Shown in pieces: positions 32,270-63,153 of a stretch of DNA of 64,000 bases. This DNA comes from Selaginella moellendorffii (Eukaryota; Plantae; Lycopodiophyta), in the NCBI RefSeq assembly GCF_000143415.4, contig NW_003314270.1:2225048-2289047 (forward strand). The letters run 5' to 3'. The translations under genes were made by a program, and so were the position numbers. Under the pieces are notes generated by a model. That model was not told where the DNA came from. It worked only from the letters and a program-made list of their open reading frames with translations, and did no database searches. How positions within the stretch are numbered: the first letter of the stretch is position 1; every line of letters begins with the position of its first letter.

Positions 32270-32745
32270 TTTCTTGTCGAGAACATTGCATGCTTGCTCT
32301 AGACACGCAGCAAGTCTATAGTCATGTTGTAATCACTCTCCTTCAGCAGGCTCAACAATGCCTAGGCCCCGTCGTCAACTGCCATTCTGGACGGCATCCT
32401 CTTTGTTTTGCAATCCAGCTTGAGCGACCATCATCTTGAAAATCTCAAGGCAAGCAACCTTGTCGTAACACGTTCGGATAAGATTACCGAGTGACTGAAG
32501 TTCTTGTTGCTCGTCATGTCCTGTACGATGCCTCTCGGTCCTTAAGCACGCCCGAGACAATGGACGCGTATTCCTTCTTTTTAAGAGTGTAGCCGTCGTC
32601 GTGCATCTCTTGCAGAACACCTCGAGCTTCCTTTCCCAAGCGAGGTGTTCCCTAAGCACAGCTTTCACTCTTACAGGTTACCCTTCAGAGGCTCGCGAGC
32701 TGAAGCCCAGTCGAAGAAACACAGAGCGATGCTACCATCTTTCAG
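32270..32745 (-). pseudogene. Degenerate copy of the PPR gene segment 30175-30680 with an internal micro-inversion
   Basis: Colinear match with deletions; 32641-32697 is the reverse complement of 30574-30632. Confidence 0.85.
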
Positions 32746-32755
32746 AAACTTATTG

Positions 32756-34024
32756 TTAGCCATTGTACCAGTCGAGGAAGAGCAGCGACAGCGGAAGGAT
32801 AGTCAAGAACATAAGGAGAAACGTTCGACTGCTCGTGTTCCGCTCGATCGTCTTCCTGAGCTCCTTGTTTCCCTTGTTGACATTTTCAGTCGCTTCAACG
32901 GCCTGGAAAGCGAATGGACGTGTTTTTGAATGCATCTTAGAACAAGCACAAACCTGCTGATACAAAAGCTCGATTTGTTGGGATTGCTGGAAGACGTACG
33001 AAGAGAAGAGATGGTTTAAAGCCGACACCTCGAGCATCTTTCTTTCAGTGTCTTCCGCTGTATCTAGAAGGTTGGACAGCTCTTCCTGGAAACAGAACAG
33101 GAACACTGAGAAAAAGGATATCAAATCTCTACCTGCAGAGCTCTAGTCTCGCTGTCAAGAACAATCTGTGCCTGGGAAGGCTGAAGTTCTTGAAGATTTT
33201 CCCTATTGAACGAAGTAGCAGCAGCGGTTCTGTTGGATAGCTCGGCTTCCAGCTGAGCAGTGGCAGATTGGAGGTGAGGCCTTCGTTTTGGTAGTGTTTT
33301 ATCCAGCGCCTTCTGAAACCTGGAAGCTCTTAAGGCATCAAATATGGTTGTCACTGCATGCAACTTCTCGCTGAGCATCAACACCTGAAAGAGCCATGCA
33401 TAAAACAACGAAAGTCTAAACCCTCTAGAGACTCTTACTATGCCGTGTTGGTGTGCATTCAAATCAGCGTTTACGGCTCCTTTCCAAAACGATTTTTTTC
33501 CACCCGCGATACTGTTCTTCAAGTCGTCAATTCGTTGCTTGCAAGCCTTGACAGATAACCCCACCTACAAAACGAAAGAAGAAAGAACATCACATTCCAA
33601 AAAAACAGGAACAAGCACAAAACTTCACCTCGTGTTCGATGTTGTCTCGTTCTTCCTCAGTACATCGTTGTCGATCCAGATAATCCTTTCGTCGCTCCAA
33701 AATAAACGATTCCATTGTCCGAATGTGACCAAGCTGCATGAAATCCAATCCGCACACCAGAATCACGAGCGCGACAAAGGAAAAACTCGAGCAGCGATTA
33801 CATACAATCTCCAATGCTGCTGCTGTGAAAGGCAGAAGCTCCAGTGTCCTGTGCATTATCAGAGATGAGGCGATCTTGACCTGGACCGGTCCGTAAGAAA
33901 CATCTCTGCAAAATCTAAGCGCTGGATCGCGAAACCTCACCTCATCACATTGTGGAATCGATGCCGCCGCTGCCCGCACGGCATCCCTAAACGCCTCGGT
34001 GCGATCACGTCGCGCCAGCGCCAT
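32756..34024 (-). CDS. SYP81: Syntaxin-81 (ER Qa-SNARE, syntaxin-18 type), multi-exon
   Basis: RDRTEAFRDAVR, RCTEEERDNIEHEV, AHQHGIV, DSETRALQ, MLEVSALNHLFS, GNKEL.K.I.RN.SSRTFLL, C-terminal TM ending LFLDWYNG. Confidence 0.92.
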
Positions 34025-34351
34025 TCCTCTGTTCCAAAAAACCCTAACAAAAGCCCATTCGTTTATTTGGTTCCTTTTATTCCTTCACTTATTTCCGCGT
34101 CAGAGAACTCAAGATCTTAGCTAGAGCTTCCAAGCGCCTCTGGGATTCCAGGACCTTCCAGCGAAATATCGCGAATTCCAGCCTTGGATCGAAGAATGCA
34201 GTCTGGATCCGGCAGCGCAGGCATTGCAGCGCGGGGATTGGTACAGGATTTGGCGTCGGCTCCAAGCTCCAGCACCGATTCCAGCAGTTAATGGCACGCA
34301 ATGAAGGGCAAATCCTCCGCCGTGGCGCTGGATTCATTCTCCTCACAGGCA

Positions 34352-36090
34352 ATGATCAAAGGGAGGGCGGCCGCGAGCGCTCTTACCCCAAAATTATGCG
34401 TCGCGGTCCTGTGCCTCGCGAGCTTCTTCATCGGATTCTTCTCTCCCAGCAGGTATTCCATCGATTTGTTTGAGATTTTCTCCTTTGCACAGTCTAGATC
34501 TGTGTGTGCTGTGCTTGCATTGGGCTGCATTGCTTGGGTGAATCGAGCGAAAGTGTTGTTTACTTTTTTTACTTCTGGCAGTGGTAGAAAAAGACAGTCA
34601 CAGGAAGGGTTATATTCCTTCTAGAGCTTGAATACGCAGAAAGGCGCCTGTGAAAGCTCGTGGTCACCCAGTGGAAGTGCTGCACACTACACGTTAAAAG
34701 CTTTGCTTCCACAGGATCTTAAGAACTTTTCTTTACTCCCATTAGATCTTCCTTCCGAGCGGTTCTCTTCCCAAAACTAATGTCAACATAGTTTTTTTTG
34801 TCTGTGCAGCAGATCAACGAGCCCAACAACGCTCTATAGAAGCGGGAGTGTTGGGAACGCTAGCATTAGGATCAAACAACGACCGAAAGCTCTCGTTGTG
34901 GTAGGAATAAACACTGCATTTACAAGCCGCAAGCGCAGAGACTCCGTGCGTGAGACGTGGATGCCCAGAGGCAAGTCAAGTTTTCTCTAAAGATTTTGGT
35001 TCCTTCTCCGTGGCTAAGTTTCTCTCGTACCAGGAGCGGAGCTCAAGAAACTGGAAAAGGAGAAAGGCATTGTTGTCAGATTTGTCGTTGGTCACAGGTA
35101 GGAACTTGTCTTGTGTTTCCTGTTTTCCTGATTATTTCGATCCTTAGTGCTACTCCAGGTGGAATTTTAGAGCGTACGATTGATGCTGAAGATGAGCTCT
35201 ACTCGGACTTTCTCCGGCTGGTACATGCTACAACCCTTCAACATAAAACCATTTCTGATTACTTGGAATTCCAGGATGATCATATCGAAGGCTATCGTGA
35301 ACTATCCGCCAAGACCAAAGCGTACTTTGCTACAGCCGTGTCGCTTTGGGATGCAGATTTCTACGTAAAAGTCGACGATGATGTTCATGTAAACTTGGGT
35401 AGGCCAGCTCTCGCTTTTCCTTAACAGCGTTTCACAGTTTTTGTGTGTCAGAAAAACTTGGGAAGACATTGGCACGTCACCGCTCGAAACCTGGTATTTA
35501 TATTGGTTGCATGAAACATGGAGCTGTTCTTTCCCAGAAGTAAGCTTTGCCGCATTTGCTAATCCATGATCCTGTTCGTTTTCCATGAACTCAGGGGTGG
35601 GAAGTACTACGAGCCCGAGTTTCGAAAGTTTGGAGGAGATGGGAATAGATACTTCCAGCACGCAACGGGACAACTCTATGGCATCTCTCAGGATCTGGCA
35701 GCATATATCTTGGCGAACAAGTAAATCTCCTGTTTATTTGTTTCCAGTCCAGATTCTCATTTGGTTTCTCCACAGGGACATTCTCCACAGATATGCAAAC
35801 GAGGATGTGTCACTGGGAGCTTGGCTCATCGGTTTAAACGTGAAGCACATCAATGACCGGAGCCTGTGCTGCGGAACTACAGGTGTGATCACTCGATCGT
35901 GTGAACTTCAACTTAAAAATCCCTCACAGATGAAGTTGGTTTGCCAGATTGCGAATCGAAGCTCCGAGCTGGAAATGCGTGCGTCGCTTCGTTCGATTGG
36001 TCGTGCAGTGGGATTTGTAGATCGGCCGCGAGAATGAGAGACGTCCATCGACGATGTGGAGAGCACAGCAACAGCACAGTAGCACGATAG
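34352..36090 (+). CDS. GT31 beta-1,3-galactosyltransferase, multi-exon
   Basis: N-terminal [85 protein letters not shown]. Confidence 0.92.
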
Positions 36091-36166
36091 CACGACTGTA
36101 TATTCTTGTAGTATATTCCGCTTCAATGTGACCAAGATTCTTGCGTGGAATATGCGATCGAAATTC

Positions 36167-36181
36167 TAGGGTTTAGGGTTT
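36167..36181 (+). promoter_or_regulatory. Tandem telo-box (TAGGGTT) upstream of Pescadillo
   Basis: tagggtttagggttt ~20 bp before the ATG; telo-boxes are known at plant ribosome-biogenesis promoters. Similar motifs at ~3145, ~30951 and ~34039. Confidence 0.6.
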
Positions 36182-36199
36182 GAGGGCGGGCGGAAGAGA

Positions 36200-36597
36200 A
36201 TGGTGCGTGTTTCGTCGCGATGCTCGAGCAATGTGCTCAGATCTTTCATCTTCGCAGGTGAAGCAGGTTAAGAACGCTGTCAAGGCGGCCAAGCGCAAGC
36301 TCCACACTGGCAGGCGCGGGAATCCGGGGAATGCAGCGAAATACATTACTCGGAACAAGGCGCTCAATCGGCTCCAAATCAAGCTCCCCGAATTCAGGTA
36401 TTTGGAGACGCTACTGGTTCTTATCTTGAAATCGTCAAATTTACACAGGCGGTTGTGCATTCTCAAGGGAATCCATCCCAGAGAACCAAAGAAAAAATTT
36501 GAAGGGCAGAACAAAACTTACTATCATGTCAAGGACATAAACTTCCTTCTGCACGAGCCACTCCTCGAGAAAAGCAGGTAATTCTTCCTATCCTTGG

Positions 36598-36634
<37 letters not shown>

Positions 36635-38812
36635 ATTTTGTGACACTACTTACAGGGAGATTCGTGCTTACGAGAAGAAAATTACCAAGGCCAGGGCCAA
36701 ATACAATGCAGACCTTGCGCATCGTTTGCAAAATAATCGGCCATCTTTCACACTTGATCATCTAGTCAAGGAGAGGTAAGAAGTAATTGTGTAATCTTCG
36801 TTAAAGATAGATATTTGTTGGTGTATCAGGTATCCTTCTTTCATTGATGCCGTTCGCGACTTGGAGGATCCTCTGACTATGATCCATTTGTTCGCTACTC
36901 TACCGGCTGACACAACCCATAGCGTTCCATTTGAGCGGGTCCATAGTTGTCGAAGGTATTAGACCATTCTTTTCCCTGAATCACGTAGTGATGTTTTGGT
37001 GGCAGGCTGAGTCTTGAATGGCAAGCATATGTTACGCGAACACACTCTTTACGGAAAATATTCGTCTCTGTAAAAGGGATCTACTATCAGGTGTGCTAAG
37101 TTTCAGTCTAAATTGATAGTGACCAATGGTTTTTTACTTTGCAGGTCGAAGTATCGGGCCAGAAGATCACGTACTTGACTCCACATGTTCTCAATCAGAT
37201 TCTTCCGGAGGACGTCGACTTTCGGGTGATGCTTACATTTGCCGAGTTTTATGAGGTACTTCTTGCTGTTTTCTGTTTTTTCTCCTATTGATCAGCTTAT
37301 CTTCTACAGACGCTTCTGGGTTTCGTCAATTTTAAACTTTACCATTCCCTGGGATTAAACTATCCTCCAGTTTTGGATCCTCGATTGGAGCAGGCTGCTG
37401 CAGGTTGTGAACTCTTACGTGAGTAAAATTTACGTTTAACGTCGTTTTGAACTTCCAGAACTCTATGCACTGATGAAGGACTTGGCTGGCGGAACTACAT
37501 CTGCCCCTCTCTTGGAAGATGCCTCGGCGAAAGAAGACGATGCTCCTGTTTCTGTGGATGAACAGCAAAGCCTAATGGAAGCAGAAAACAAAGAGAAGAG
37601 GATAGCGGAGTCTCAAGCAAGACTAGCGTCTTTGCAAGATAGACTGAAGCAAATAGAGAAGGAGAAGGAGAAGCCACAAGACGTTCCAGTGCAAGTCAAA
37701 ACTGAAGCTATGGACGTGGATGACGTTATCGAAGATGAGGATCTGGAAACACGGACCTGCAGGCGCTTGTTCCAAAATCTCACCTTCTTTTTGGGGAGAG
37801 AGGTAAACGATTGACTTCGTGTTTTTTCTTTCTTTTTCTAACGTTTGGACCTTCCAGGTTCCGAGGGAGTCGTTATTGTTTGTTATTCGTTCTTTCGGAG
37901 GTGCAGTATCCTGGGATGGAGATGGCGCCCCTTTTCCGGAAAATGACGAAGTCATTACACATCAGGTAACTTCATTCTCGTACGAGCTAGGCTGATCGTT
38001 TGTTCAATCACAGATTGTAGATCGCCCAACACAAGGACACAAATTTCTATCGAGGCATTATGTCCAGCCGCAATGGGTGTACGATTGTGCGAACAACAGG
38101 ATCCTGCTGCCAACGGAGCCTTATCTCCTTGGAAGGTGAGTGATACTGCTCTGGTGGCTCGCGTCACTGAATCTAGAATGCCAGGATTCCTCCGCCGCAC
38201 CTATCGCCGTTTGTGGATAACGAGGCGGAGGGACACGTTCCAGAGTACGCTGATACCATCAAAAGGCTGCGGCTTGCGGTGAACCAGCAGCTGGCGCCAC
38301 TGCCAGGAAGTGAATCCGGGATCGATGAAGGTGAACTTTTGGTTGCGGCTGCTGCTCGGCGTCGGGAAGATCTTGAAGCCGAAAAGGAACGCGAGGTAGG
38401 ACGTCTGGAAAACATTGCATTGTAAGCATTCTTGTGTGGTTTGCCTTTGCAGCTAGCTGCGATGGAGAAATCCTATGCCGAAGACTTGAGGAGAGAGCTG
38501 GCGGGGAAATCTTTCTCAGGAGAAGAGGAAGCTCTTGCGGATGTGCCAGAAAGTGAGGTCCTTCCGCCACCGAAAGAGGACGATCCCAAGGACATGGCGA
38601 AGATGATGTTGTCCAGGAACAAGAGAAATCTCTACCAAGCCATGGAGGTAAGACTTTTCTTCATTTTGTTTCTATGACAAGGCTACATTCTTGTGCTAAT
38701 GACCTTGCTGCTACAGATGAGCAACACCAAGAAGAAGGAAGGAGTGAAGCTGATCAAGGAAAGGAAGCGAAAGGCTGACGAGAAAGAAAGAAAGAAGACT
38801 AGAACAATGTAG
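36200..38812 (+). CDS. PES: Pescadillo homolog (BRCT-containing ribosome biogenesis factor), many exons
   Basis: [102 protein letters not shown]; first coding exon appears to be ATG only. Confidence 0.93.
36600..36629 (+). repeat. (CT)n microsatellite in a PES intron
   Basis: tctctctc... run. Confidence 0.9.
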
Positions 38813-39070
38813 ATCTACGAAGTATATTCACAAGAAGATTCCTTGGACAATATTTTAGGGCACTTCTTACCTGGACTGTGATCTAGCCGTCGAAGTCGTA
38901 TGACGGCCCCGATTGTATCTTAAGCTTAAGAAGTGTTTAGGGTGACTGTCAGTGTGCCAGGCCGCTATAAATCCAGGCGCGAGCGAAGCTCACTTCAAAG
39001 CTTAGCCGGATCATTCCCTCGCCACTCACAGTAGCTGCGATTCCTTTCTTTTTGCGAGCAGCGACCGGAT

Positions 39071-41126
39071 ATGGATCCACATTCTTACGCAGATTTCTCG
39101 CAGCTCCTCACCGACAGCATCGCGCTCGATCTCTTCCTCGACTTTGAAAGGCGGATCATCGTCGGCAGCGCCGATTTCACCCTGCGCCAGGCGTTCTCCG
39201 GGGATTTCGTCCTCGACACACGAGATCTGCTCGTCCGGGGCGCCTTCGATTCCTCCTCGCCGGCCAAGAAGCCACTGGCATTCGATATTTCGAGCGAGCG
39301 GCACCCGATCAAGGGCCAGCGCCTCGTGCTCCATCTCCCCTCGCCGACGAGCCGCTTCTTGATCCTCTTCACCACATCGCCGCAAGCGTCCGCCCTCCAG
39401 TGGCTTGATCCATCGCAGGCCTCCTCCGGGAAGCACCCCTTCGTCTACACGCATTGCCAAGCTCTCCACGCGCGCTCCATCTTTCCCTGCCAGGACACGC
39501 CCTCGGCGCGATTCAGGTTCTCGGCGAGGATCAACATCCCCCAGGAGATGCGCGCGGTGATGTCCGCCGCGCATGTGGAGCGGCTGGAAGCGATCGCTCC
39601 CGGGCGCGCGGTCGAGGTTTTCGAGATGGAGCAGCCAATCCCGCCCTATCTCTTCGCTCTCGCGGCGGGAGAGATCGCCTGCGAGGAGCTGGGAGCTCGA
39701 TCCAGGGTGTATGGCGAGCCGGGCATGGTGAAGGCGGCGGCGCAAGAGTTCGCGGCCACCGAGGGGATGATCGAACAGGCGGAGGCGCTGTTTGGGCCGT
39801 ATGACTGGGAGAGATTCGACATGCTGGTGTTGCCGCCAAGCTTTCCCTATGGAGGGATGGAGAACCCGAGGATGGTGTTCTTGACGCCGACGGTGATCGT
39901 TGGCGATCGGAGCGGCGTCTCGGTGGTGGCACACGAGCTCGCTCACAGCTGGACCGGGAATCTCATCACTAATGCCTCCGCCAACGATTTCTGGCTCAAC
40001 GAGGTGAGAATTCTCCCGCTTGCGTGATTCCAATTGTTTTGTTTAGATCATCTTTTTCTTTTCTTTTTGTTAATCTTGCCTGCCTCGAGCGGTCTTGTCT
40101 CTTTGATTGCTCGAGCATGCTTGGTACTACTGTTCTTGGTGTTTGATTGTAAATTATGATGAGGATGCTGACGTTAAAGAATGAATGGCGGTCTCTCAGG
40201 GATTCACCACCTATGCGGAAAGGCGGATCGTGGAAGTTTTGGACGGGAAGGAGCGGGTGGCCCTTCACTATGGGCTGGGATGGAACGGATGGGAAGAGGA
40301 GATCGAGCGATTCAAGGATAGGCCCGAGTTTACCAAGCTTAAGACCAACCAGGAGAATGTGGATCCCGACGAGGTATACTCCCAAGTTCCATACGAGAAA
40401 GGCTGCTTCTTTCTCAAGAGGCTCGAGGACGAGGTCAGTCGTCCGGCATTTGACGACTTTCTCGAACGCTACATCGCCAAGTTTCGCTTTACGTCGATCG
40501 ACACGGAGACGTTCCTGGTGTTTCTGAGAGATTACTTCCCGGGGATTGATGAGAAAGTGAACGTCGATAGATGGATTTACGAGCCAGGCATGCCTCCCGA
40601 CGCTCCGAAGCCAAAGTCTGGAATTCTGGAGAGAGTTTTGGGGATGGTGGCGGAATTCAAGTCCCAAAGCGAGAGTTACGATGAAGAAGCCTGGAAGAAG
40701 TACCTCGAGTCACTCAAGGAGGAAGTTTTGGGGTGGCAAGCTCTGGAGTGGCAAGTTTACCTCGAGAGCCTTCCAAAGAAAGTGGCGAGCGTGATGATAC
40801 TCCGTGATCTGGACTCGGTGTTTCATCTGTCGAGGAGTCCCAACTGGGATCTCCGGGTTGCGTTCCTGGTGATTGCGGCCAACTCGGGTTTCCAGGCTTG
40901 CTACAATGACATCGAGCAGGCGCTGATGATGGTGGGAAGAATGCGGTACCTTCGTCCTCTCTACAGTGGTCTGCTGGACAGCAAGGACGAAGCCGGCATG
41001 GACCTTGCAAAGAAAGTATTTGCAGAGGCTCGTCCGAAGTATCATCCGATTGCTCGCTCGGTGGTGGAGGGATTGATGAAGGCGAAGGACGGGAAGAGCA
41101 ATGATGGAAAGTTATATGAGCAGTGA
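39071..41126 (+). CDS. LKHA4: M1 aminopeptidase / leukotriene A4 hydrolase homolog, 2 exons
   Basis: MDPHSY, SFPYGGMENP (GxMEN), HELAHSWTGNL...FWLNEGFT (HExxH-x18-E), YSQVPYEKG, VGRMRYLRPLY. Confidence 0.94.
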
Positions 41127-41554
41127 CTGGGTATCGAGGACCTCAAAGGTAGGAATTATTTTTTCCAAAAGTTCTCGACAGCTTTCCGGGCCTGCTCACT
41201 GATGCTGATCCTCCTGCAGGTGTAGTGGAAGGAATTTCTCTGACCGGGAATGATCTGGTCCTCGGTCGAATAAGGTACAGGAGCCTAGACTCTAGATTAT
41301 CATTAGTTGTCTTATCGGCTTGCTTAAACAAGTGAAAAGCACTTCAGTCTGTGGGCTGAGTTTTTTAATCCGCATCTTACATTTTGCGCTATAATCTGGT
41401 TCTTTGCAGGCTTAAGTTTGCGAAGATCACATCTCCGAGGTATTTTTAGTGAAATGAAGAAAGCTTCTTCAAGAGTAAGAGAGCTTCTCGAGCTTGTTTA
41501 CGTGATCGCTGCCTTGATCCAGGAAAAATTCAAGTAATCCCAGAGGTGGGACGT

Positions 41555-42210
41555 TTATAAATCATCTTGGTCGAAGAACATGGCATCTATTGCGTCGGTA
41601 AGAATGAACTCCACTAAATCCTGGCATCCCTTGGTCATGTAGAGCCTAATCTGATTCTTTGCACTCCAGCCAGCAGTGAAAGCGGCCATACAAATCACGC
41701 ACGCTGCCGAGAAGGCCACCGTTTGGCCCAGCTCCTTGACTTCTATTCCCTTGAACACATTGTTGCCGGTCACAACCTCTAGTCCTAGAGCTATGGCGAA
41801 AGCTACCTGCAAAGACGAAGGAATCATCCGTGAGCAAAGGAGCTGCCTCGAAAGCCAAAAGGAGAGAAACGTACCATTGCAGCGCGGCCTGAGATCGTCT
41901 CAAAGTCTTGAGCTTGGGCCGTGGCTTGGACACTGGCAGCCAGTTGCTTGAGGAAAACAGACGAGGCGGCCGAGTCCCAAGCGCTTGATCCCATGGCTAT
42001 GGAGTCTCCCCCGTCTTGGCTGAACGCTCGCAGTGTGCAGAGTCTTGGAGGCTTTTCCTCCATTACTCTTGATCGAGTAGCAACTAGATCCTTTGCTTCA
42101 ACGATTTCATCTGTGTTTCTCCTGCTACTTGCTCTCACTCCCATTTTGCTCCTCCTGCTAAGCACTCCTCCGATACTAAAAGAGGAACCAGCAGCTCCTT
42201 TCGTGGCCAT
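41555..42210 (-). CDS. Stress-enhanced protein (SEP2-like, LHC-like superfamily), 2 exons
   Basis: Chlorophyll-binding-like motif DFETISGRAAMVAFAIALGLEVVTG, second TM segment, transit-peptide-like N-terminus. Confidence 0.7.
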
Positions 42211-42714
42211 GGAAACGCAAATCTTCGCTGCTGCTTGGAAGAGTCAGTGGCTGGAGAGAAGTTCTACCTCGCAGTGGAAGAAGTTCTACCTTGCAGCACG
42301 CACAAACTCGTTCCCTGAACCTTGGAGCTCTTTTCTAAGTTTCCCAGAAGGTTCTAAACCAAGATATCAACTTAACTATGGGCGAAGAGAAGAAGACCAC
42401 GTATCCGAATGACAAAGGACCTTGGAATAAAAGGGAGCGGTAGTAGAGCGGCAGCACACGAGATTCCCGTCACATCCCAGCAAGCTCTGGCAAGTTTCCT
42501 TTTGATTTCTCTCGTAAAAACTTGCGACTTTTCGTCCCCGATCAAAATCGTGTTGTTGCTGCTTCACTGACGCGTCTTGATTTCACTTTGCAGATCAGTC
42601 CAAGCCCCGGGTCGTTCTCAAGCAGCGAGAAAAATCCAGATTTCCGTCGCCAACTTTTCCTTTTTCCCTGCCTTGCCACCCTGCTCTCTGTTTTCCGAAA
42701 GATGGCCGGCTTTG

Positions 42715-43599
42715 CTAGTTACTGCCCCTGCTTCCTCGAGAGCCTTGAGGGAAGAGGAACTTCCCCTTGCGGCGGCTGCACCTCAAATCCAGCCCCAAGT
42801 CGTAGGCCACATTGAAGATGGAAACGCTGCTCAAGCTGAGCGACAGCGAGTTGTGCCTCCGGTACAAGAGCTGCTCGATATCCCCGGCCATCACCTCGAA
42901 GATCCCAAAGTCGGAGTCATTGGTGAGAATGGTGGTCTTGGGATACAGCATGGCCGACTGGACGACGAACAAGTAGTCCTTGACGCGGCTCTTGTGACTC
43001 TCCTTCATCGCCAGCCACTTCCCCTTGGGAGCTCGCCGGAAGAGCCCGATGAGCGAGTCCACCACCCGGTTGGCATCCTCGAGCCTCTCCTCGGACATGG
43101 TCGAGAAGGGGATCGCGCTCGACAGCCCAAACAGCGCGTACTCCTTCCAGGCCACCGGCGGAGCCGCGAGCTTGGCGCCCTTGAGGAGCTCTAGGAACCT
43201 CTCCCGGTCGGCCGTCACCTGCGATGGCTCCAGCCTGAGATCCTTGAAGAGGCAGGCGACGCTGGTGTCGAGGACGAAGGTGTCGCTCTCCCGCCTGGAT
43301 TCCAGCTGCCGGAGGAGCGGGCTGTTCATGGTGGGGATGGGCGGGGCCGCCCTCACGAACGCGACGCGCGTGCCGGCGGCGTTCTCGGTAGCCACCGACG
43401 GCTGCGCGCGCCGCCGGGGGCACTGGTTGGCGGCGGCGAAGGGGCGTACCTTGCGCGTGAGGATCCCCAGGCGCTTCTTCCGCTCGCGCTCCGCCTGGAG
43501 GAACTCGCGCTGGCCGGGCCACAGCTCCGTGCGGTGGAAGGACTCCTCGCGGCGCCGCTTGAACGCCGCCAGGCTCGCGGATCTCACCCGAGCCCGCAT
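42715..43599 (-). CDS. Hypothetical protein with a PIN (VapC-like) ribonuclease motif set, intronless
   Basis: 294-aa GC-rich ORF; FVLDTS, VAWKEY, VKDYLFVVQSA and ILTNDSDF occur in PIN order and spacing. Confidence 0.65.
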   Translation of the reverse strand: MRARVRSASLAAFKRRREESFHRTELWPGQREFLQAERERKKRLGILTRKVRPFAAANQCPRRRAQPSVATENAAGTRVAFVRAAPPIPTMNSPLLRQLESRRESDTFVLDTSVACLFKDLRLEPSQVTADRERFLELLKGAKLAAPPVAWKEYALFGLSSAIPFSTMSEERLEDANRVVDSLIGLFRRAPKGKWLAMKESHKSRVKDYLFVVQSAMLYPKTTILTNDSDFGIFEVMAGDIEQLLYRRHNSLSLSLSSVSIFNVAYDLGLDLRCSRRKGKFLFPQGSRGSRGSN

Positions 43600-43686
43600 T
43601 TCTACCGTTCTGCCCTAGGCTAGAAGAGATCGAAGAAAACTATAATAAATCCTGTACAAACAGCCAAATCCAATGGAGCAGCGCTG

Positions 43687-44226
43687 CTACTTATTGCCGG
43701 ATCTGGCAGCTAGCGCCGCCGCCTTGTCCTTGATCTCCTCCTGGGACGCGGTGATCATCCACACGGGATCTGGCACCGACGCCTCCGGGATCGCCCACCG
43801 ACGTGGCGAATTCTCCTCGAGGGGCTGGCCGATGAGAGCCAGATCCTCCCAAAACTCCCGCCCTCTGTCGAAATTCCGCTCGTAGCTGTCCATCTTGTAG
43901 TAGTGCTGCTGGTGTGGATCGAATTGCCCGCCCTGGGGATTGCCATCATGGATCCAGCCCCTCCGGAACCTGGCTCGGCATTTTCTTACCAGCTGCGTCC
44001 ATCGCGAAGGCCTCACGTAGGGCTTGGGCCCCGAGGCTCCCAATTGTGGATCCAAGGAGGACGAAGCGGACTGCGAGCGCGATCCCACGCCGATGTAGCT
44101 GGGGCCATGACTCTTCAACAGGGCTGCCTTGTCCGCGAGCCATCCACAGAGGAACCAGCTCTTGAGGAGCTCCAAGAAGCTCGGGGATTGAGCAGCCGCG
44201 GATTCGACCACTCCCTGCTTATCCAT
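43687..44226 (-). CDS. Small uncharacterised protein, paralog of 48239-48931
   Basis: 179-aa ORF with W...RK.R...HYYKMDSYERNFDRGREFWEDL; resembles plant 'YD..SY..NFD.G' small proteins. Confidence 0.65.
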   Translation of the reverse strand: MDKQGVVESAAAQSPSFLELLKSWFLCGWLADKAALLKSHGPSYIGVGSRSQSASSSLDPQLGASGPKPYVRPSRWTQLVRKCRARFRRGWIHDGNPQGGQFDPHQQHYYKMDSYERNFDRGREFWEDLALIGQPLEENSPRRWAIPEASVPDPVWMITASQEEIKDKAAALAARSGNK

Positions 44227-46639
44227 GGTGGTTGCCCTAGATACACCAGCCTCAGTTTTAAAGTTTAAAGGTCTAAAACCTGTTATTATAAGATTAGCAT
44301 TATCTTATAACTAGTAATTGCCCAGCCAATGCTGAGTAGTTGGCAAAGCCTTTCAAACTCACCAATATATTTTCATGACAGAATTGCTCACATCTCATAA
44401 TTTCTTTATTGATCCCTAGCTGCCTAAGAATCAATTTTCTTCACTCTAAGCCATTTAAAAAACTTCTTAACCTCTTTGACAAAGCCATTACCTCACTTGG
44501 AACCCAAAATCCCATCTTTGGGACCCTGGCATACTTTATGAGATATAGAAACCCAATGGTATGTATGCAATTGCACATTGACTTTTATATATTGTCAGCT
44601 TCTATGTTTATCCATTTTTTCCACCTCTTCCAAGATTGTGTTGGTATTTGTGAGCTTTGAGGCAGCTACAACCCTATGGTTGTCAATGTTGATTGCTCCT
44701 ATGAATTAGAAATGGAAAAGAGTTTGCAAACTAAGAAACATGATTTTAAATGGAAAAAAAACTGTAACTGATTAAATCTAGATGTTCATCTAGAGTGTCT
44801 GTTAAACACTGAACCCTTTAAAAAAACTAATACTATTTTTAAGTTTATTATAAGTTTTGATGATTGTTCACTTCTCCATGCTCTTACATCATGCTCCAAA
44901 AGTTAGTGGTGATTTCCTAGTTGTTTATACTTTTGGTTGTTTTATAGAGCACTGGACTTCCATAAATCCAGAGTGACACATGTTGTAGACTAAGGTAAAT
45001 TTGGGAGGCCCAGCCCATCAATTAGAGTGAGGGATAAGTATCAACCCACTTGAAAAATGAAAAATTGAACACTCTAAACCATGCAACATAACTATGAGTA
45101 TGTGAGACACAACTATACAGGTATGCAATTTAAACATAGACCTATGGACTTTACCAACTTCTTATTTTATTCATTGCTAGCATTTGATGCCAATGCCATT
45201 AGCTCATCTCTTTAGCCAACTTAACTCTGATTTTCAATCTGATCCCAGTTATCAGATTGATCCATGGCCATGCCATTATGTTCAAGATGATCCTCACCAT
45301 CTCACGCCTAGCATGTTGGCATAACATAAAGCTGGAGAGTGGCCAGCCATCAAGACACCTTCTCCCAGCATTCCAGCTATTGACACCTACATGGAGCTAT
45401 TGGCACAAAGTTTCTTCTTCCTGATTGTCACATTGAAACTGCAAGAAAAAGGAATTTGCATTCAATATCAACACCTGACTAACTTTCTTGGTCTTGATCT
45501 TGGAAGCTCTAGACTAATTCTTCAATTTCAAAAGTAGAAGTATCAGATTGTGATATATGATTGTGGGCAACCCTAAACTTTAAATGCCAATTCTTAGCAT
45601 AATCATCCTAGATGATGCTAAGAGTACACGTTAATTGGCCTGTCCTGAGTGCAATGTGATTTTCTCAAATTCCTAGACTAATATGTGTTTTCTCTAATCC
45701 ATGGCTTTCACCCACAACACCTAATGAGCTTCTTCTCTTCCAGCTAGCATGCTTGTTATTGATTGGCCATCCAAACATCAACATGATTTTTCCATAATAA
45801 TAATACATTTCCTCACGTCACTCCTTACACTCGAGGAACGTATATGTCCACCAAGGTCTTGGTAAGCTTTAAGGTAAACCATCAATGAAAGCTAGAGAAA
45901 TAATGTAGGCACTATTCTGATCATGAAGACATGCTCCCAATGGAGGTAGGAATGGTAGTCTTCAGCAATGAACAATTTATAGATGGTCATCTTTCTCCTT
46001 CTTGGCAATTCTCTTTTAGGACTACATGAAGCCATTGTCAGCAGTGTCCTATCAATGGGTAACTATAGTCATAGTTTTCAGTTGCATTAAGCATTGCCAG
46101 TATTTTACAGGTTGCTTGGACTTAAAGATGAAGTTTTTCTCATAGATGTTTGTTCTTCGGCTAATTTAGCATGAGCTATTTGCCTTGCGGCATATAGAGG
46201 GTCATGCCTCCTAACTTGCCAAAGCTGCCAATGTGATCGATTGCCTTCTAGAATGCCTTAGTGTTAAGCATGATCCCATTGCTCACTCCCCCAAAATCGG
46301 CAATGGAGAAAACACATGGCCATGCCCTCAATAGCTTTGGGACCAACCTATTCTTCATGCTGTTGCATCCCTAAGCAATCATCCAATAGGAACAGCAATG
46401 GCAATGCATTCTTCAAGGTCCTTTCTTTGTTTGATGATCAACACTTTGCATATGATATATGTCTTAGTGCTTTCTTCTCTTGCCCCACATAGTTTGGTTG
46501 CCTTCCATTAGCTGAGAGCAAACATCAACACAATTATTTGTTAAGATGTGGTTAAAAATATAACCCTTTTTACCCCCCATTGGACAGCTGCAATTGGCTA
46601 GATCCAACAGCCCGGAAGTTTGGCACTCCCTCCTTATTA

Positions 46640-47950
46640 TTGTAGGTTTTTATATAGACAGTTATTTATCTTAGACTAATAATATATATGAATATTTAGA
46701 GATAAGAATGTATTTTTTTACATAAATTTGTTTCTTATACTTTTATTTAAATTAAAGCATATTAATGAATCCACTTATAATAAGTCTAAACACTAATATT
46801 TAAAATTTTTTATTAAGCAATTTAAGTTAAGAACAAATGCTTTTTGAAATTAATGAAGTTTTTTATTAAATATTAAACTTATAGAGGTTTAGTTTAATAA
46901 AAATATTATAGAAAGTTAATCATAAATTTAAAAGAAATTATCCTTGCTTTTTTAATATTATGTAGTGTACAAAAGTCTTTTGATAAAATATGATTCTAAT
47001 AACATTTATCAGTTTTTAAGCACTTTGAAGTTTTAACAAGAATATTATTAAATAAAATTAAAACAATTAAATTCAATTAAATTCATTTATTTAAGATTAT
47101 TTTACTTTAAATTCACAAAATTCAGTTTTTGTCCAAAATTGAATGTGAACATTGTAAGAATCTAATTCTATTATTGCAAATGAGTGATAAATTTAAGGTT
47201 TAGAGGTACAAGTTTTCTTCTATTTTTTTATAATGATGTTGTTAAACTTTGAAAAACTTTAAATATGAGATTTTATAATAAAATTATTAAACTTAAATAT
47301 ATTAAACATTTCCTTCATAATGATGAACTACCAACATTTTAAATATGTAACATATTTTTTATTTTTATTAGCTCAATAATAATTTTAAAAATTTGAAAAT
47401 TCTTTATAAGTATATATAGTTTTATACTTTTAAAATGATAGTATGAGTGTATAGCTCAAAATCATAGATTTGACATATAACAATAATATAAGATGAAATT
47501 AATTGATTCGACAATGTGATAGAATTTTTTTTAAAAAAATCCTTACAATTGCAAAATGAAATTTTTTTAATATACCACTTAAGTTGCAAACTTCACTCAT
47601 TGATAAATATACAATTTGGCTTTAAGGATATAAATAATTTATGAATTGTTTTCACCTATAAAAGGTGTAAATTATTTTTCTATTTAGTGTTTTTCTTGAC
47701 TATTATTTACCTTTTAAAACTGCATAAGAAGTGTTATTTTTCAGTTGATTAACCAAAATTTATATACTTGTCTTTCAGTGTCTATCGCTATTAACTTTAA
47801 TCTCTACTAATCTCTGAGTATTTACTGGACAATTGCTATTTCTTATTATAATAGATTGCTTGTATAATCTAAGAATATGCTTTACAAATTTGTGAATATT
47901 TTAATATTATTCTTCTTGGAATACTAAATGAATAATGATTTTTAATAGGA
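46640..47950. other. Very AT-rich non-coding island, probably transposon-derived
   Basis: Sharp compositional drop, no ORF of 60 aa or more; preceded by ~2.3 kb of decayed CpG-poor sequence (44300-46600). Confidence 0.45.
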
Positions 47951-48238
47951 AAGCGAAGTCTTCCTAGGGGTGCAAGCTACAAATTTCAGTACTGGCACCC
48001 AAAGGATTTTTCTTGTGCGGCATTCAATGCCCATCAGAGTTGACAATGAAATCCTTGCATCCACGCAGCAGTGCGTGACGAATCTCCATCATGGTTGCCA
48101 GATGAATGATTCAATCCAATCCATCAGCCATTGTTAAAAGTCTCAGAAAAATCACAACTAACTCCAGATTCCAAATTCTGTGATGGAAAGATCAAAGCAC
48201 CTAGCCTCACAAATAAAAAGAAAAGAAAGAATGATCAA

Positions 48239-48931
48239 TCAACCAAGATGACAATGCTCGTTTCTCTGCCAAACCATGTCATCTCCATTGCGGTCCTGCT
48301 CCTGCTCTTGGTGAAGATCGACCCAGCAATGGCCGTGCTGCTGCTGGATCATCGCAGAAGAAGAGTAGCAATGCATCCGATTGCTGACGGATCCGGGCGA
48401 GCAAAATGGGGATATGTCGAGAAAGGGAAGATCCGCCCAGTACTCCCTGCCCCGATCGAAGTTCCTCTCGTAGCTCTCCGTCTTGTAGTGGTGGAGCGGC
48501 GGCTGTGGATCTACGCACATTGAGTCGTAACACGACGATTGGATCTTCCTGGCCTCGGCCCGCCACTTACGAATCGCCTGCTTCCACTTTGGCGGCCTCT
48601 CGTAGCCGCTGCCGTGGTGGTGATGGTCCTTGGAGGAGCTGTTCTTGGCGTTCTTGGCGTCCTTGCTCCGCCTTCTCCTCAGACCGCCGAGGCAATCGAG
48701 AATCCAGCTCTTGCAATCGAGAGCAATCACCTGCTGCTGCTGCTGCTGCTGATGCCGCGGGCGCTGCTCGTCGATAGTCTTGTCGGCGCTAGGATTCTTG
48801 GCGCCCTCTTCTTGCAATGTGGATGCCGAGGTGGGCCAAGACGCTAGAGACGAGGGCGAGAGCACATTGTAGGCATTCTCCACGAATCCCATAGCTCGAT
48901 CGATTGATTCTTGATGCGCTCCGAGCATCAA
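48239..48931 (-). CDS. Small uncharacterised protein, paralog of 43687-44226
   Basis: KSWILDCL, YERPPKWKQAIRKWR, HHYKTESYERNFDRGREYWADL; the first ATG in the ORF is near the 5' end, start codon uncertain. Confidence 0.65.
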   Translation of the reverse strand: MMLGAHQESIDRAMGFVENAYNVLSPSSLASWPTSASTLQEEGAKNPSADKTIDEQRPRHQQQQQQQVIALDCKSWILDCLGGLRRRRSKDAKNAKNSSSKDHHHHGSGYERPPKWKQAIRKWRAEARKIQSSCYDSMCVDPQPPLHHYKTESYERNFDRGREYWADLPFLDISPFCSPGSVSNRMHCYSSSAMIQQQHGHCWVDLHQEQEQDRNGDDMVWQRNEHCHLG

Positions 48932-49393: not shown

Positions 49394-51637
49394 ATGGCGG
49401 AGACGGCGGGATTTCTCACAGATGAGCAGCGCAAGCTGATGAAATCGGCGTCGCTGACCCGCGAGAGCTCCGCGGAGCTGCTGTCGCCGAGGGCGGCGTC
49501 GGGGAAGCACCACGAGAGGAAATCGCATTCGGGGAAGAATGGGCGACCTAAAAAGGGTATGCTTTCCTTGTAGCTTGCATTTTTCCTCGGTAGGCAATAA
49601 CTTAGAACTGTGTTTTGGCATGTAGGTGGCAGTGGTGGCAAGGGGACTTGGGGATCCGTCATGGAAGATGGTAGCAAGAGGGTTCTTATTGATCGAAACG
49701 ATCCTAACTATGACAGTGGAGAGGTATGCTGATAAAAAGTCTCTTTTTCTCAAGTCCTTACCAAAAAAAACGTTCTTTTCTTGCAGGAACCATACCATCT
49801 GATCGGTGCTCACGTCGCTCAGTCGTTACAAGTGTACAAAGAGAAGGTTGTATATATAGTGGAGGAATATTTTGCTACTGGCAACGTCGCGGACGCGGCC
49901 ACAGATTTGCGAGACCTCGGCTCGCCGAGCTACCATCACTACTTCGTCAAGAAGCTCATTTCCATGGCGCTGGACAGGCACGACAGGGAGAAGGAGATGG
50001 CGTCGGTTCTACTGTCGGCCCTCTACGCCGACGTGATGGAGCCGGACCAGTTAGCCAAGGGATTTACCAAACTACTCGAGTCGGCGGACGACTTGGCGCT
50101 TGACATTCCGGATGCTACCGACGTCCTGGCACTTTTTCTTGCTCGAGCAGTGGTGGACGACATTCTCCCGCCGGCATTCTTGTCCAAGACGCAGGCTGTG
50201 TTACCGGACGGCTCCAAGGGCCTCGAGGTTCTCCAAAACGCCGAGAAGAGCTACCTCAACGCGCCGCTGCATGCAGAGGTCGTCGAGCGACGCTGGGGTG
50301 GCAGTACCCAGACCACCGTCGAGGAAGTGAAGCGGAAGATCACCGACCTGCTGAAGGAGTACGTGGAGAGCGGGGACCAGGCCGAGGCCCGCCGCTGCAT
50401 CCGAGAGCTCAACGTGCCTTTCTTCCACCACGAGGTGGTCAAGAAGGCCCTGACTCTGGTGATTGAGAAGAAGAGTGCCGAGGCCGGGATCGTGTCCCTC
50501 CTCCAGGAGTGCGCCGACGAGGGTCTCATCTCCTCCAACCAGATGTCCAAAGGCTTCTCCCGCGTTTTCGACGCGCTGGAGGACCTCTCGCTGGACGTCC
50601 CGCAGGCCCGTGAGATTCTCGAGGACCTCGCAGCCAAGGCCATGTCCGCTGGCTGGCTCAGCTCCTCGTTCGTCACTCCCGCTGCTGCTTCTGCTGCTGC
50701 TGCTGCCGCCGCTGCTTCCAACGACGATGGTGCTGCAGCAAACGGTGACACCGCCGTCGACGATGCTCATGTCTTCAAGCAGAAGGCCACCGGGATCATC
50801 CAGGAGTACTTTTTGTCCGACGACATAGCGGAGGTGGTGCGGAGCCTCGAGGACCTGGCAGCCCCGGACTTCAACGCGGTGTTCGTCAAGAAGCTCATCA
50901 CCCTGGCAATGGACAGGAAGAACCGGGAGAAGGAGATGGCGTCGGTGCTCCTGTCGGCTCTCTACGCGGAGGTGATCCCGGTGGGGCAGATTGGAAAGGC
51001 GTTCACGATGCTGCTCGAGTCGGCCGAGGACACGGCCCTGGACATCCCGGACGCCGCCAACCAGCTCGCTTACTTCCTTGACCGTGCGGTGGTGGACGAC
51101 ATACTCCCGCCGCTCTACCTGGAGGAGATCAACGAGCAGCTGCCGGAGGGGTCTCTGGGAAAAGAGATCGTGCACTCGGCCGAGTCCATCCTGGCGGCGC
51201 GGCACGCCGGGGAGCGGATCCTGCGCTGCTGGGGCGGCGGCACGGGCCGCGCGGTGCTGGACGACGCCAAGGACAAGATTGCCAAGCTGCTCGAGGAGTT
51301 TGAGAGCGGCGGCGACATGGGGGAGGCGTGCCAGTGCGTGCGCGACCTGGCCATGCCATACTTCCACCACGAGGTGGTGAAGCGCGCGCTGGTGATGGCC
51401 ATGGAGAGGAAGAGCGCGCGGCCGCTGTGCTTCCTCCGTGAGTGCTCCAGCGAGGGCCTCATCACGACGAGCCAGATGGTGAAGGGATTCGGCAGGGTGG
51501 CGGACTATATCGACGACCTCGCGCTCGACATCCCCGACGCCAAGAGTAAGTTCCAGGGGTTCGTGGACGAGGCCAAGGCACAGGGCTGGCTCTCCAGTGC
51601 CTTTGGAGGCGCTGCGCAAGCCAATGGTAGTGCCTAA
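49394..51637 (+). CDS. MRF: MA3-domain translation regulatory factor (PDCD4-like MRF), 3 exons
   Basis: MAETAGFLTDEQR, PKKGGSGGKGTWG, DRNDPNYDSGEEPY, four MA3 repeats (FVKKLISMA, FFHHEVVKKAL, LALDIPDA). Confidence 0.94.
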
Positions 51638-57126: not shown

Positions 57127-57140
57127 ACTCCACCACCTAT
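57127..57140 (-). promoter_or_regulatory. Polypurine tract of the nested element
   Basis: ATAGGTGGTGGAGT on the minus strand immediately before the 3' LTR. Confidence 0.8.
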
Positions 57141-60100: not shown

Positions 60101-61215
60101 TCCTTTGGCAAGGGGTTCTCATGAACCCACCAACATAGCCTCAAGGTATCACACCTTAGCACATTTGGTGTCTCCACACCATCGGCTCCACGAGCCTACC
60201 TCTATGACATTTCCCCTTCGTGTCTAAGTCTTTGCCAAGACCAACACCGCTCTTTCTCATGCCAACCATCCGTTAGCACTGCACCATAGAGGTCACACAC
60301 AACTTTATGTCAAAGTTGTTTTCTTCTGGGAACACCTTTCCCATAACTTTAGCATGGCATATTTTGCCATCGATGAGATACCCTCTGTTCTCATCCTTGG
60401 ATCCTATAATCCCCCCCCATCCTTTGTGGGGTATAACACACCTCAGTCCAAATGCTTCCATCAGTCCTTTTAGGACCATCTGTTGACTCTACTTGAGTCA
60501 TCCAGCAGTTTTGGACTTGGTTAATCCATAGACCCGTAAGGTCCTACTTGTGAGGCACTAGCTCACTGGAATACACTTCTTGCATTCCTGTCCTACTCAA
60601 AAGGACTATTTTCACAAGTGTTATTCCGACACTTGATTTTGTTCTCTGGGGGCAACCTTTGCCCCTTAGGATTACTTGTCCATGTGATGAGAACACCAAC
60701 TCATCCACTTAATACACCCCCAACACCTGGGGTTGTTCCAGCATTTATTAGAGGTAGCCCCGGCTACCTTTTCAAGGACTTGAGTCCTCTTCCGTATTTG
60801 ACCTCCCACGGTCATTACTTCTGGTCTCACATTCATGAGCACCAACCTTAACTATATGAGGAAAATCTTGTGACTCCTTTATTGCTTTGGAGTCTTTATC
60901 TTTCCCGTGATCCCAACTGTAGTTGTTTACCACAACTACACTAGCCAGTTTGCTAAGTCAAACGCTCATCTGGATCACATCCCCAACTCTTTGAGGAAAA
61001 CCATATATTGTTCCCAAGATCCGAAAGTCGTTCCCTTATTGGCCCCCTTTTTTTTTTATCCACCACATCACGCCCAAGTTCATGCATGAACTCGAGTGGA
61101 GAGCCATGTCCTCTCGACGTGCTACTCCTCAAGGATAGGACCACTCCTAGGACCTTCCGATGCCAATATCAATGGTGATATACTTGAGCGCCAATAAAAG
61201 TCGGACTAAGGAACA

Positions 61216-61227
61216 GCTCCGATACCA
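61216..61227 (-). promoter_or_regulatory. Primer-binding site complementary to tRNA-iMet
   Basis: TGGTATCGGAGC on the minus strand, 3 nt from the 5' LTR (canonical TGGTATCAGAGC). Confidence 0.88.
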
Positions 61228-61230
61228 AAT

Positions 61231-63139: not shown

Positions 63140-63153
63140 ACTTGGCCCTCACA

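Follow-up and report, generated by a model that had tools for sequence, protein, structure and literature searches.

Coding status of two adjacent reading frames

The locus lies in nuclear DNA of Selaginella moellendorffii, within a stretch of 64,000 nucleotides (the window), and comprises two co-oriented open reading frames on the reverse strand: ORF1, which encodes 179 aa (43687-44226), and ORF2, which encodes 294 aa (42715-43599; ATG start, stop codon included, from the ORF listing of the window). Between the end of ORF1 and the ORF2 ATG lie exactly 87 nt, the gap to a co-oriented small frame that the initial annotation had pointed out, and the two ATG codons are 627 nt apart and thus in the same frame. 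The features of the two frames are listed here by their coordinates in the window.

43687-44226, reverse strand: ORF1, 179 aa, in the same frame as ORF2; ATG context ACCACCATGG
43600-43686, reverse strand: non-coding spacer of 87 nt between ORF1 and ORF2, with a second in-frame TAG at 43615-43617
42715-43599, reverse strand: ORF2, orphan protein with a candidate PIN-like domain (ORF listing, codon GC, haplotype pN/pS)
43315-43599, reverse strand: basic N-terminal extension of ORF2, aa 1-95, with abundant Arg, Lys and Ala (pI 12.0, GC3 0.958)
42814-43302, reverse strand: candidate PIN-like domain, aa 100-262 (ESM features and three-motif signature; no Pfam or PHROGs match)
43261-43278, reverse strand: motif FVLDTS, aa 108-113 (D111), candidate S1 strand and first catalytic Asp
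43138-43158, reverse strand: motif PVAWKEY, aa 148-154 (E153), candidate acidic residue after S2, an uncertain assignment
42952-42984, reverse strand: motif VKDYLFVVQSA, aa 206-216 (D208), candidate Asp at the N-terminus of helix H4
42907-42930, reverse strand: motif ILTNDSDF, aa 224-231 (T226, D228, D230, F231), candidate S4 strand and Thr-x-Asp-x-Asp-Phe

The GC content of ORF2 by codon position was 0.59/0.48/0.905. This GC3 of 0.905 compares to values of ~0.5 or lower in the flanks and is typical of GC3-rich host genes, such as the 618-aa gene at 49781-51637 (GC3 of 0.81). Between two haplotypes, ORF2 carried 7 synonymous and 3 nonsynonymous differences, corresponding to a pN/pS of 0.14 (binomial p = 0.003), whereas the two alternative frames over the same stretch gave ratios of 1.5 to 3.5. 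ORF2 was intact in both haplotypes, with neither an indel nor a stop codon, and the flanking DNA contained indels. Its ESM recognition value was 2674, where a mark of 2300 is reached by 91% of real families. ORF2 is clearly a real coding gene of the plant nuclear genome. For ORF1, GC3 was 0.76 and haplotype pN/pS was 0.20. Scanning the locus for Rfam families and repeats returned nothing relevant.

The protein encoded by ORF2 begins with the basic N-terminus described in the initial annotation, and all four motifs quoted there are found downstream of it at the positions listed above. The leader may have a role in targeting or RNA binding, and two helices within it (aa 5-21 and 28-49) had the highest scores in an AlphaFold2 model that was poor elsewhere.

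Relatives of ORF2 and evidence on a PIN-like fold

An exhaustive phmmer (HMMER) search of ORF2 against 1.84 billion representative proteins recovered its own gene only, as did a word-index protein search with the whole protein; the same word-index search with the domain alone was blank at E <= 10. We found no prokaryotic relative in GTDB genomes, plasmids (tblastn, E <= 10) or ~15 billion proteins. Pfam searches at E <= 10 with the whole protein and with the domain gave no PIN family and a single spurious HAD match in the leader, ORF2 was unmatched in NCBIfam, PADLOC and PHROGs, so that none of these four profile libraries sees a PIN domain, and PDB sequences, queried by phmmer at E <= 10, likewise yielded nothing. 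A literature search on the locus tag of the public gene model, SELMODRAFT_405471, and on plant VapC found nothing. As judged by these searches, ORF2 is a lineage-restricted orphan whose relatives are undetectable outside its own gene. This outcome agrees with the remark of the initial annotation that the protein does not resemble the standard eukaryotic PIN proteins, no family of which was matched, and no characterized plant protein was matched either.

In the definition of the PIN superfamily by Matelska et al. 2017 (PMC5499597), one Asp follows strand S1, a second opens helix H4 and a third follows strand S4, with Glu also allowed at the latter two positions, and another acidic residue usually lies past S2. 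With E153 taken as a candidate for the last of these, the acidic motifs of ORF2 fit this definition, with 42 residues from D111 to E153, 55 from E153 to D208 and 20 from D208 to D228, and the PIN-like order and spacing proposed in the initial annotation hold at the level of motifs. In terms of the PIN clan (CL0280), TFVL-D111-TS would provide the Asp of a putative S1 strand, D208-YLFVVQSA the acidic N-terminus of H4, and TTILT-N-D228-S-D230-F, 20 residues past D208, the acidic residue after S4, all of these being motif-level assignments. Two residues are candidates for the fourth acidic position: E153 (PVAWKEY), which has VapC-like spacing, and E136 (FLELLKG), which stood opposite VapC E42 in the first hhalign alignment.

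Among the closest known systems are the VapC PIN toxins (PF01850, VapC group of the PIN-like superfamily), such as MvpA/VapC from Shigella and PSLT106 from Salmonella pSLT, in which D7/E42/D98/E119 would correspond to D111/E153/D208/D228-D230 of ORF2, and D98 is 21 residues from E119 compared to 20 residues between D208 and D228. Both proteins have LDT[SN] in the first strand, D-x-x-hydrophobic at the start of the helix and T-x-[DN]-x-[DE]-F after the fourth strand, and their domains are similar in size. At individual motifs, hhalign pairs FVLDTS of ORF2 with the MLDTN motif of VapC; the D208 motif, which falls in a helix (203-218) of the low-confidence model, fits the pattern D-x-x-hydrophobic-hydrophobic-x-x-small (compare DQMIAGHA in VapC); and ILTNDSDF is comparable to VVTNNxREF, which is invariant in VapC alignment A1. 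There is, however, no significant sequence or profile similarity between VapC and ORF2, and ORF2 differs from VapC in being a eukaryotic nuclear gene with GC3-rich host codons, in its 95-aa basic N-terminal extension and in a C-terminal tail of ~30 aa past the candidate domain.

We expressed these features as a loose three-motif signature, consisting of an S1 strand that ends in D-[TSA]-[SN], an H4 helix starting with D, and an S4 strand with T-x-[DN]-x(1,2)-[DE]-F behind it, at PIN-like spacing; the signature is partly post hoc because it was composed after ORF2 had been seen. It matched ORF2 and 92 of 107 real VapC proteins, and no match arose when ORF2 residues 96-294 were shuffled 200,000 times; in a six-frame translation of the whole window, it matched ORF2 only. 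Its expected frequency is 2-3e-7 per protein. At the sequence level, the combination of motifs in ORF2 exceeds chance.

By ESM features, aa 100-262 scored 0.93 to the DUF4411 cluster and 0.92 to the PIN and VapC clusters, up from 0.90 for the whole protein, although 4-10% of shuffled proteins also attain 0.90-0.93. The neighbor sets listed all belong to the PIN clan (PIN, PIN_3, DUF4411, VapC, DUF5615 and DUF6190), at shared-feature counts of 130-147, where members of a true family typically have 170. The signature and the ESM result are not independent because ESM features may read the same short motifs. The nearest cluster, both for whole ORF2 and for the domain, was DUF4411 (PF14367), an uncharacterized prokaryotic PIN-like family with members of ~200 aa, which we treat as a lead. 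DUF4411 proteins have four conserved acidic residues and are only distantly related to archetypal PIN domains (PMC5499597). ORF2 differs from them in that the Pfam model was unmatched even at E <= 10, and in context, as the bacterial and archaeal DUF4411 genes are often paired with HTH and DUF955 genes and ORF2 is not. With the eukaryotic PIN proteins (SMG5/6, NOB1, Fcf1/Utp23/Utp24, Rrp44/Dis3, SWT1 and NYN/PRORP), ORF2 would have in common a presumed fold class and metal-dependent RNase chemistry; the Pfam models of these proteins did not match ORF2, and while the proteins themselves are found throughout eukaryotes, the searches for ORF2 gave no relative beyond its own gene.

Comparison with PIN profiles, a check suggested in the initial annotation, did not favor a PIN domain: in addition to the blank Pfam search, hhalign against VapC was not significant. 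The hhalign profile was made from PSLT106 (the mvpA homologue of pSLT) and relatives, 80 from GTDB and 44 from IMG/VR, with 107 MvpA-type VapC proteins used. Against this profile, which covers one subfamily, ORF2 aligned over the first strand only (score 17.2, probability 1%), a result equaled by 3 of 100 shuffles, and global mode against the same profile returned nothing. An alignment for structure prediction cannot be built because ORF2 has no relatives; run without one, AlphaFold2 gave all-helical guesses with a pLDDT of 36.7 for the full-length protein and 36.0 for aa 100-262.

The blank profile tests and a pLDDT of 36 are in keeping with ORF2 being a real orphan protein with a non-PIN fold, its motifs and language-model neighbors reflecting coincidence or convergence on short patterns. 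The frequency of ESM scores near 0.9 among shuffled proteins, the low shared-feature counts and the chance that ESM reads the same motifs point in the same direction. A coincidence of this kind is nevertheless hard to reconcile with the rarity of the signature, both in expectation and among the shuffles, and the ESM score rose rather than fell once the flanks were trimmed. Weighing both sides, we consider a non-PIN fold unlikely, albeit an alternative to be taken seriously.

Transcription of the locus and the public gene model

Both ORFs were covered by genome-colinear, joint-free contigs from four probable RNA runs belonging to four studies (contig X1, 42349-44320; X5, to 44234; X13, to 44185; X9, to 44141), and both haplotype alleles appeared among these RNA-like contigs. 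Coverage ended around 44320, and depth was zero in all four runs over 44388-44900, which served as an internal silent control. A further run, labeled as a different organism, contained half of the 31-mers of the locus. The RNA label of the runs is a guess, and contigs give neither strand nor rare isoforms; they can also merge overlapping transcripts and show no transcript ends, and a single transcript is therefore unproven by them. On the evidence of the contigs from these four probable RNA runs, ORF2 is transcribed, which supplies the expression named in the initial annotation.

The public gene model, SELMODRAFT_405471, has three exons and encodes 471 aa; it fuses ORF1 to ORF2 via a predicted intron, with ORF2 as the last exon, and ORF2 is 99% identical to its residues 178-471. 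We mapped its intron positions over from the other haplotype, whose joined exons reproduce the public protein.

42300-44320, reverse strand: stretch with unspliced colinear contigs, which extend ~162 nt past 42300 (strand taken from the coding frames, not from reads)
43615-43764, reverse strand: intron 2 of SELMODRAFT_405471, which would fuse ORF1 to ORF2; absent from the contigs
44237-44515, reverse strand: intron 1 (44237-44471) and 5' mini-exon (44472-44515) of SELMODRAFT_405471, both unsupported

The predicted introns and the 5' exon are unsupported because the contigs show no splice and nothing upstream of ~44320; contig X1 is unspliced to 44320, that is, within predicted intron 1. The term intronless, as used in the initial annotation, thus suits ORF2 itself and the RNA-like contigs, but the public annotation has ORF2 as the last of three exons. 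Other ways of fusing ORF1 to ORF2 were also considered. An 89-nt GT-AG intron (43602-43690) was rejected, as its length is not a multiple of three and the frame is shifted, and use of the remaining acceptors close by would either break the frame or retain the second TAG.

If the public model were correct, the 150-nt intron at 43615-43764 would join the two frames into one protein of 471 aa that carries the PIN-like domain C-terminally. Such a fusion would make sense of the common frame of ORF1 and ORF2, of the GT-AG pair at 43764/43615, which is the only nearby in-frame path past both stops, and of a gap of 87 nt that is shorter than an ordinary eukaryotic intergenic region; a rare spliced isoform would, moreover, be dropped by contigs. 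No joint was present, however, in any of the four runs from four studies, and the 87-nt spacer was kept in 4/4 RNA-like contigs. The 26 ORF1 codons that intron 2 would remove look coding, being GC3-rich and free of haplotype differences, unlike the spacer, which has 4 differences in 87 nt compared to 0 over the 78 nt of ORF1 just before it. The first exon and first intron of the public model are contradicted as well, and we regard the fused gene as improbable.

Bicistronic nuclear genes of green algae resemble the present locus in having two coding ORFs, a short spacer and one apparently unspliced transcript (here judged from contigs). In the algal loci, ORF1 has a weak start context and few AUGs precede ORF2, which allows leaky scanning (PMC11291117). 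In contrast, the ORF1 start context here is strong (ACCACCATGG) and nine further AUGs lie between the ORF1 and ORF2 start codons, a departure from the algal pattern of weak context and AUG depletion. A scanning ribosome should translate ORF2 poorly from such a position, behind a 179-aa ORF.

This arrangement, together with its unlikeness to the green-algal loci (PMC11291117), would be natural for a relic frame in the 3' part of an ORF1 transcript, untranslated or no longer translated. Unless the loss were very recent, though, the GC3 bias, the pN/pS of 0.14 and the freedom from haplotype indels would be unexpected in an untranslated frame, and we give this reading a low probability.

Still less probable is a eukaryotic toxin-antidote-like module, in which the ORF1 product would neutralize a PIN nuclease in the manner of VapB and VapC. 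Co-orientation, the 87-nt gap and one unspliced contig lend the locus an operon-like look, and the initial annotation had remarked on its superficial similarity to an antitoxin-toxin pair. ORF1, however, matched no family in Pfam, NCBIfam or PADLOC, where neither an antitoxin-like domain nor a DNA-binding domain of the VapB kind (AbrB, RHH, Phd/YefM or HTH) was found, and a word-index protein search gave no relative. A paralog of ORF1 within the window, 4 kb away at 48239-48931, has no PIN partner. Adjacency is what speaks for the pairing.

Proposed nature and origin of ORF2

The initial annotation had also raised horizontal acquisition, and a recent transfer of a bacterial or archaeal vapC-like gene, which would suit the prokaryotic style of the motifs (LDTS in strand one and T-x-D-x-D-F behind strand four), the exclusively prokaryotic ESM neighbors and the lack of an intron in ORF2, is the least probable reading of all, given that searches of GTDB genomes, plasmids and 15 billion proteins turned up no prokaryotic relative, that GC3 in ORF2 is in line with that of host genes, and that the neighbors of ORF2 on its 4.1-Mb scaffold are ordinary plant genes. 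ORF2 could still stem from an ancient transfer after which it diverged rapidly.

We favor, at a probability of about 0.58, the reading that ORF2 is a transcribed, lineage-restricted gene for a protein with a basic leader and a very divergent PIN-like domain of the VapC group, forming its own cistron behind ORF1. The product would consist of an N-terminal extension of ~95 aa, which may supply targeting or RNA binding, and a nuclease domain of ~160 aa. By analogy with PIN domains, D111, E153 (or E136), D208 and D228/D230 would cluster at the C-terminal edge of a parallel beta-sheet, where they would bind Mg2+ or Mn2+ and cut single-stranded RNA. ORF2 would be a cistron in its own right rather than an exon fused to ORF1, with the RNA left unspliced between them. 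As the second frame on unspliced RNA, 87 nt past ORF1, it would need an internal transcription start, reinitiation or another non-standard route to be translated.

Two consequences concern the locus itself. The evidence assembled here corrects the public model SELMODRAFT_405471, and it makes the locus a vascular-plant candidate for dicistronic expression, outside the leaky-scanning rules of green algae. A bolder and quite doubtful proposal is that Selaginella has lineage-specific, very fast-evolving VapC-like PIN nucleases and that ORF2 is expressed from an operon-like dicistronic transcript with a controlling upstream partner; if this were true, the pair would be a plant counterpart of a toxin-antidote or defense module, unlike anything known in sequence.

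For the PIN family, the meaning of the favored reading depends on the fold. Should the fold not be PIN, ORF2 would be an ordinary orphan gene. If both the PIN fold and the activity are real, ORF2 would be a stand-alone VapC-style nuclease in the nuclear genome of a land plant, with no detectable relatives among ~15 billion proteins, and PIN nucleases would be able to arise, or to diverge past recognition, inside one plant lineage.

Coding evidence for ORF2 and its upstream neighbour

ORF2, the candidate PIN-like open reading frame, begins with an ATG, and the four motifs quoted by the initial annotation are all present in it. Residues 1–95, previously described as a basic N-terminus, are strongly basic (pI 12.0), and the small co-oriented ORF reported 87 bp away is ORF1, whose stop lies 87 nt upstream of ORF2. 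The earlier observation was thus confirmed, and its interpretation was partly supported, as described below. ORF1 and ORF2 share a reading frame. Two in-frame TAG codons lie between them, one being the stop of ORF1 and the other located at 43615–43617.

43687–44226, minus strand: ORF1, 179 aa
42715–43599, minus strand: ORF2, 294 aa
Within ORF2: FVLDTS (D111)
Within ORF2: PVAWKEY (E153)
Within ORF2: VKDYLFVVQSA (D208)
Within ORF2: ILTNDSDF (T226, D228, D230, F231)

FLELLK occurs in both ORF2 (aa 135–140) and ORF1 (aa 16–21), where it is encoded by a 25-nt direct repeat (43177–43201 and 44158–44182; 84% identity) that is probably a chance occurrence.

The sole database relative of ORF2 is SELMODRAFT_405471, a 471-aa Selaginella moellendorffii gene model on the 4.1-Mb scaffold GL377569.1, with 99% identity across the full ORF2. 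Because the corresponding stretch of this scaffold is 97.7% identical to window positions 32699–44858, it is the second haplotype of this locus.

ORF2 is a gene, a conclusion on which three results agree. GC content by codon position was 0.59/0.48/0.905 in ORF2, and GC3 was 0.76 in ORF1 and 0.81 in a clear host gene at 49781–51637, compared to ~0.5 in the 3′ flank and ~0.32 in the 5′ flank. Between haplotypes, ORF2 carries 10 substitutions, 7 synonymous and 3 nonsynonymous, giving a pN/pS of 0.14 compared to 1.5 and 3.5 for the other two frames (binomial p = 0.003); the ratio for ORF1 was 0.20 (p = 0.012). Neither haplotype contains an indel or stop within ORF1 or ORF2, whereas the flanks contain several indels.

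Transcription and gene structure

The public three-exon prediction for SELMODRAFT_405471 joins ORF1 to ORF2 and includes these features:

44472–44515, minus strand: 5′ mini-exon
44237–44471, minus strand: intron 1
43615–43764, minus strand: intron 2

Intron 2 would excise the last 26 codons of ORF1, its stop, and the spacer, fusing the two ORFs. We placed contigs from four runs (X1, X5, X9, and X13), each from a different study, on positions 42300–44900. Labelling these runs as RNA is a guess, albeit a probable one, because each contains 21–33 Mb of contigs and the S. moellendorffii genome is roughly 200 Mb. In all four runs, one colinear contig spans ORF2, the spacer, and ORF1; no splice joints were found across 42300–44900, the upstream contig ends fall at 44141–44320, and depth is zero over 44388–44900, an interval that acts as a silent control within the locus. 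The two haplotypes are each represented, with X13 matching the other haplotype and X1 mostly matching the window. These contigs therefore lend no support to the predicted 5′ exon or to either predicted intron. Moreover, the 78 nt of ORF1 inside predicted intron 2 are GC3-rich and identical between haplotypes, whereas the 87-nt spacer has four haplotype differences. We conclude that translation of ORF1 terminates at the ORF1 stop codon and that ORF2 forms a cistron of its own, a dicistronic-looking arrangement that conflicts with the public model, which probably fuses two separate coding regions.

A single continuous contig is not proof of one mRNA, because the contigs carry no information on strand, transcript ends, or rare isoforms and extend ~162 nt past 42300, towards the next gene. 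That gene (41555–42210, minus strand), a 195-aa public model without a Pfam family, starts ~500 nt past the ORF2 stop, and the RNA-like contigs continue into it unbroken, indicating overlap or read-through between adjacent transcripts at this point.

In green-algal bicistronic genes, a weak-context, AUG-poor layout allows leaky scanning (PMC11291117), whereas the layout of this locus is the opposite, with an ORF1 start context of ACCACCATGG and nine AUGs ahead of the ORF2 start. The simplest guess is that ORF2 would be translated via an internal start site.

Genomic setting and origin

Haplotype colinearity stops at 44858 (position 9644 of the GL377569.1 stretch, L001), ~540 nt upstream of the point where transcription apparently begins. 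Beyond it, the window enters an AT-rich block (GC 0.27 at 46001–48000) that the other haplotype lacks throughout its 9.6 kb of upstream sequence, a structural difference between the haplotypes beside the promoter. Repeated sequence at 56250–63140, with strongly negative GC skew (−0.15 to −0.25 over 54–64 kb), has many matches of 75–84% identity to the upstream region of the other haplotype (L001:2821–3577) and probably represents a family of tandem or dispersed repeats. The host gene at 49781–51637 (plus strand) is an intronless 618-aa ORF, with two internal repeats carrying DRHDREKEMASVLLSALY-like segments and, judged by eye, a likeness to MA3-domain translation regulators. Half of the 31-letter words of the locus are present in a further run, X16, whose label names a different organism; this run either comes from a very close relative or is simply labelled differently, and could supply an ortholog or second accession.

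Horizontal acquisition had been proposed for ORF2, and an ancient transfer, after which the gene diverged rapidly, is conceivable. An antitoxin–toxin-like pair had also been suggested, and ORF1 does adjoin ORF2. However, ORF1 has no recognisable domain, and a word search of proteins found no relatives of it. Its paralog in the window, a 230-aa ORF (48239–48931, minus strand; 46% identity over 79 aa, E = 4e-13) that shares the core SYERNFDRGRE followed by [FY]W, has neither a Pfam family nor an adjoining PIN-like ORF. ORF1 is thus one member of a small local family, and the pairing is doubtful. Nothing supports a recent transfer, because no donor-like sequence was found and the gene has host-like codon usage and lies among plant genes (M1 peptidase, Pescadillo, galactosyltransferase, and syntaxin-18 adjoin SELMODRAFT_405471).

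The candidate PIN-like domain

An exhaustive phmmer search of 1.84 billion representatives of ~15 billion proteins returned only ORF2's own gene, the candidate domain alone had no protein match at E ≤ 10, and searches of GTDB genomes and plasmids gave no match and of Pfam, NCBIfam, PADLOC, PHROGs, and PDB sequences nothing relevant. At this level ORF2 is an orphan, and the searches say no more. Because there are no relatives, AlphaFold2 was run without an alignment, and both models were poor (pLDDT 36.7 and 36.0).

For a profile test, we started from the mvpA homologue PSLT106 (Salmonella pSLT) and collected from GTDB and IMG/VR a set of 107 distinct relatives, the most distant at 37% identity. 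With hhalign, only the first-strand motif of ORF2 aligned to the 107-sequence VapC set, with a score of 17.2 that was equalled by 3 of 100 shuffles, and global mode found nothing against the same profile. Given these non-significant results, ORF2 is not a member of the MvpA-type VapC subfamily.

The PIN-like superfamily is defined by an Asp after S1, an Asp/Glu at H4's N-terminus, an Asp/Glu following S4, and one further acidic residue, in most cases following S2 (PMC5499597), a definition that ORF2 fits at the motif level, with E153 or E136 as candidates for this last residue. Its acidic residues are spaced by 42, 55, and 20 residues, compared to 35, 56, and 21 in VapC. A loose three-motif regular expression matched ORF2, 92 of the 107 real VapC proteins, none of 200,000 shuffles, and, when the window was translated in six frames, only ORF2. 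The rate expected for it, 2–3e-7 per protein, is somewhat optimistic, because the expression was composed after ORF2 was known. By protein-language-model features, the nearest clusters all belong to the PIN clan (DUF4411, PIN, PIN_3, VapC, DUF5615, and DUF6190). The top score was 0.90, rising to 0.93 once ORF2 was trimmed to aa 100–262, although 4–10% of shuffled proteins also attain 0.9, and the model may be reading the same short motifs as the expression.

For the proposed VapC/PIN-like ribonuclease, then, motif order and spacing and the language-model neighbours stand in favour, and the profile libraries and hhalign against one VapC subfamily stand against. Weighing these lines, ORF2 quite likely holds a true PIN-like domain. 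We assign a probability of about 0.58 to the whole explanation, a real, separately encoded, lineage-restricted protein with a basic leader and a divergent VapC-group PIN-like domain. The most fitting classification of ORF2 is as a candidate variant of the PIN-like superfamily that is lineage-restricted and falls in no defined family.
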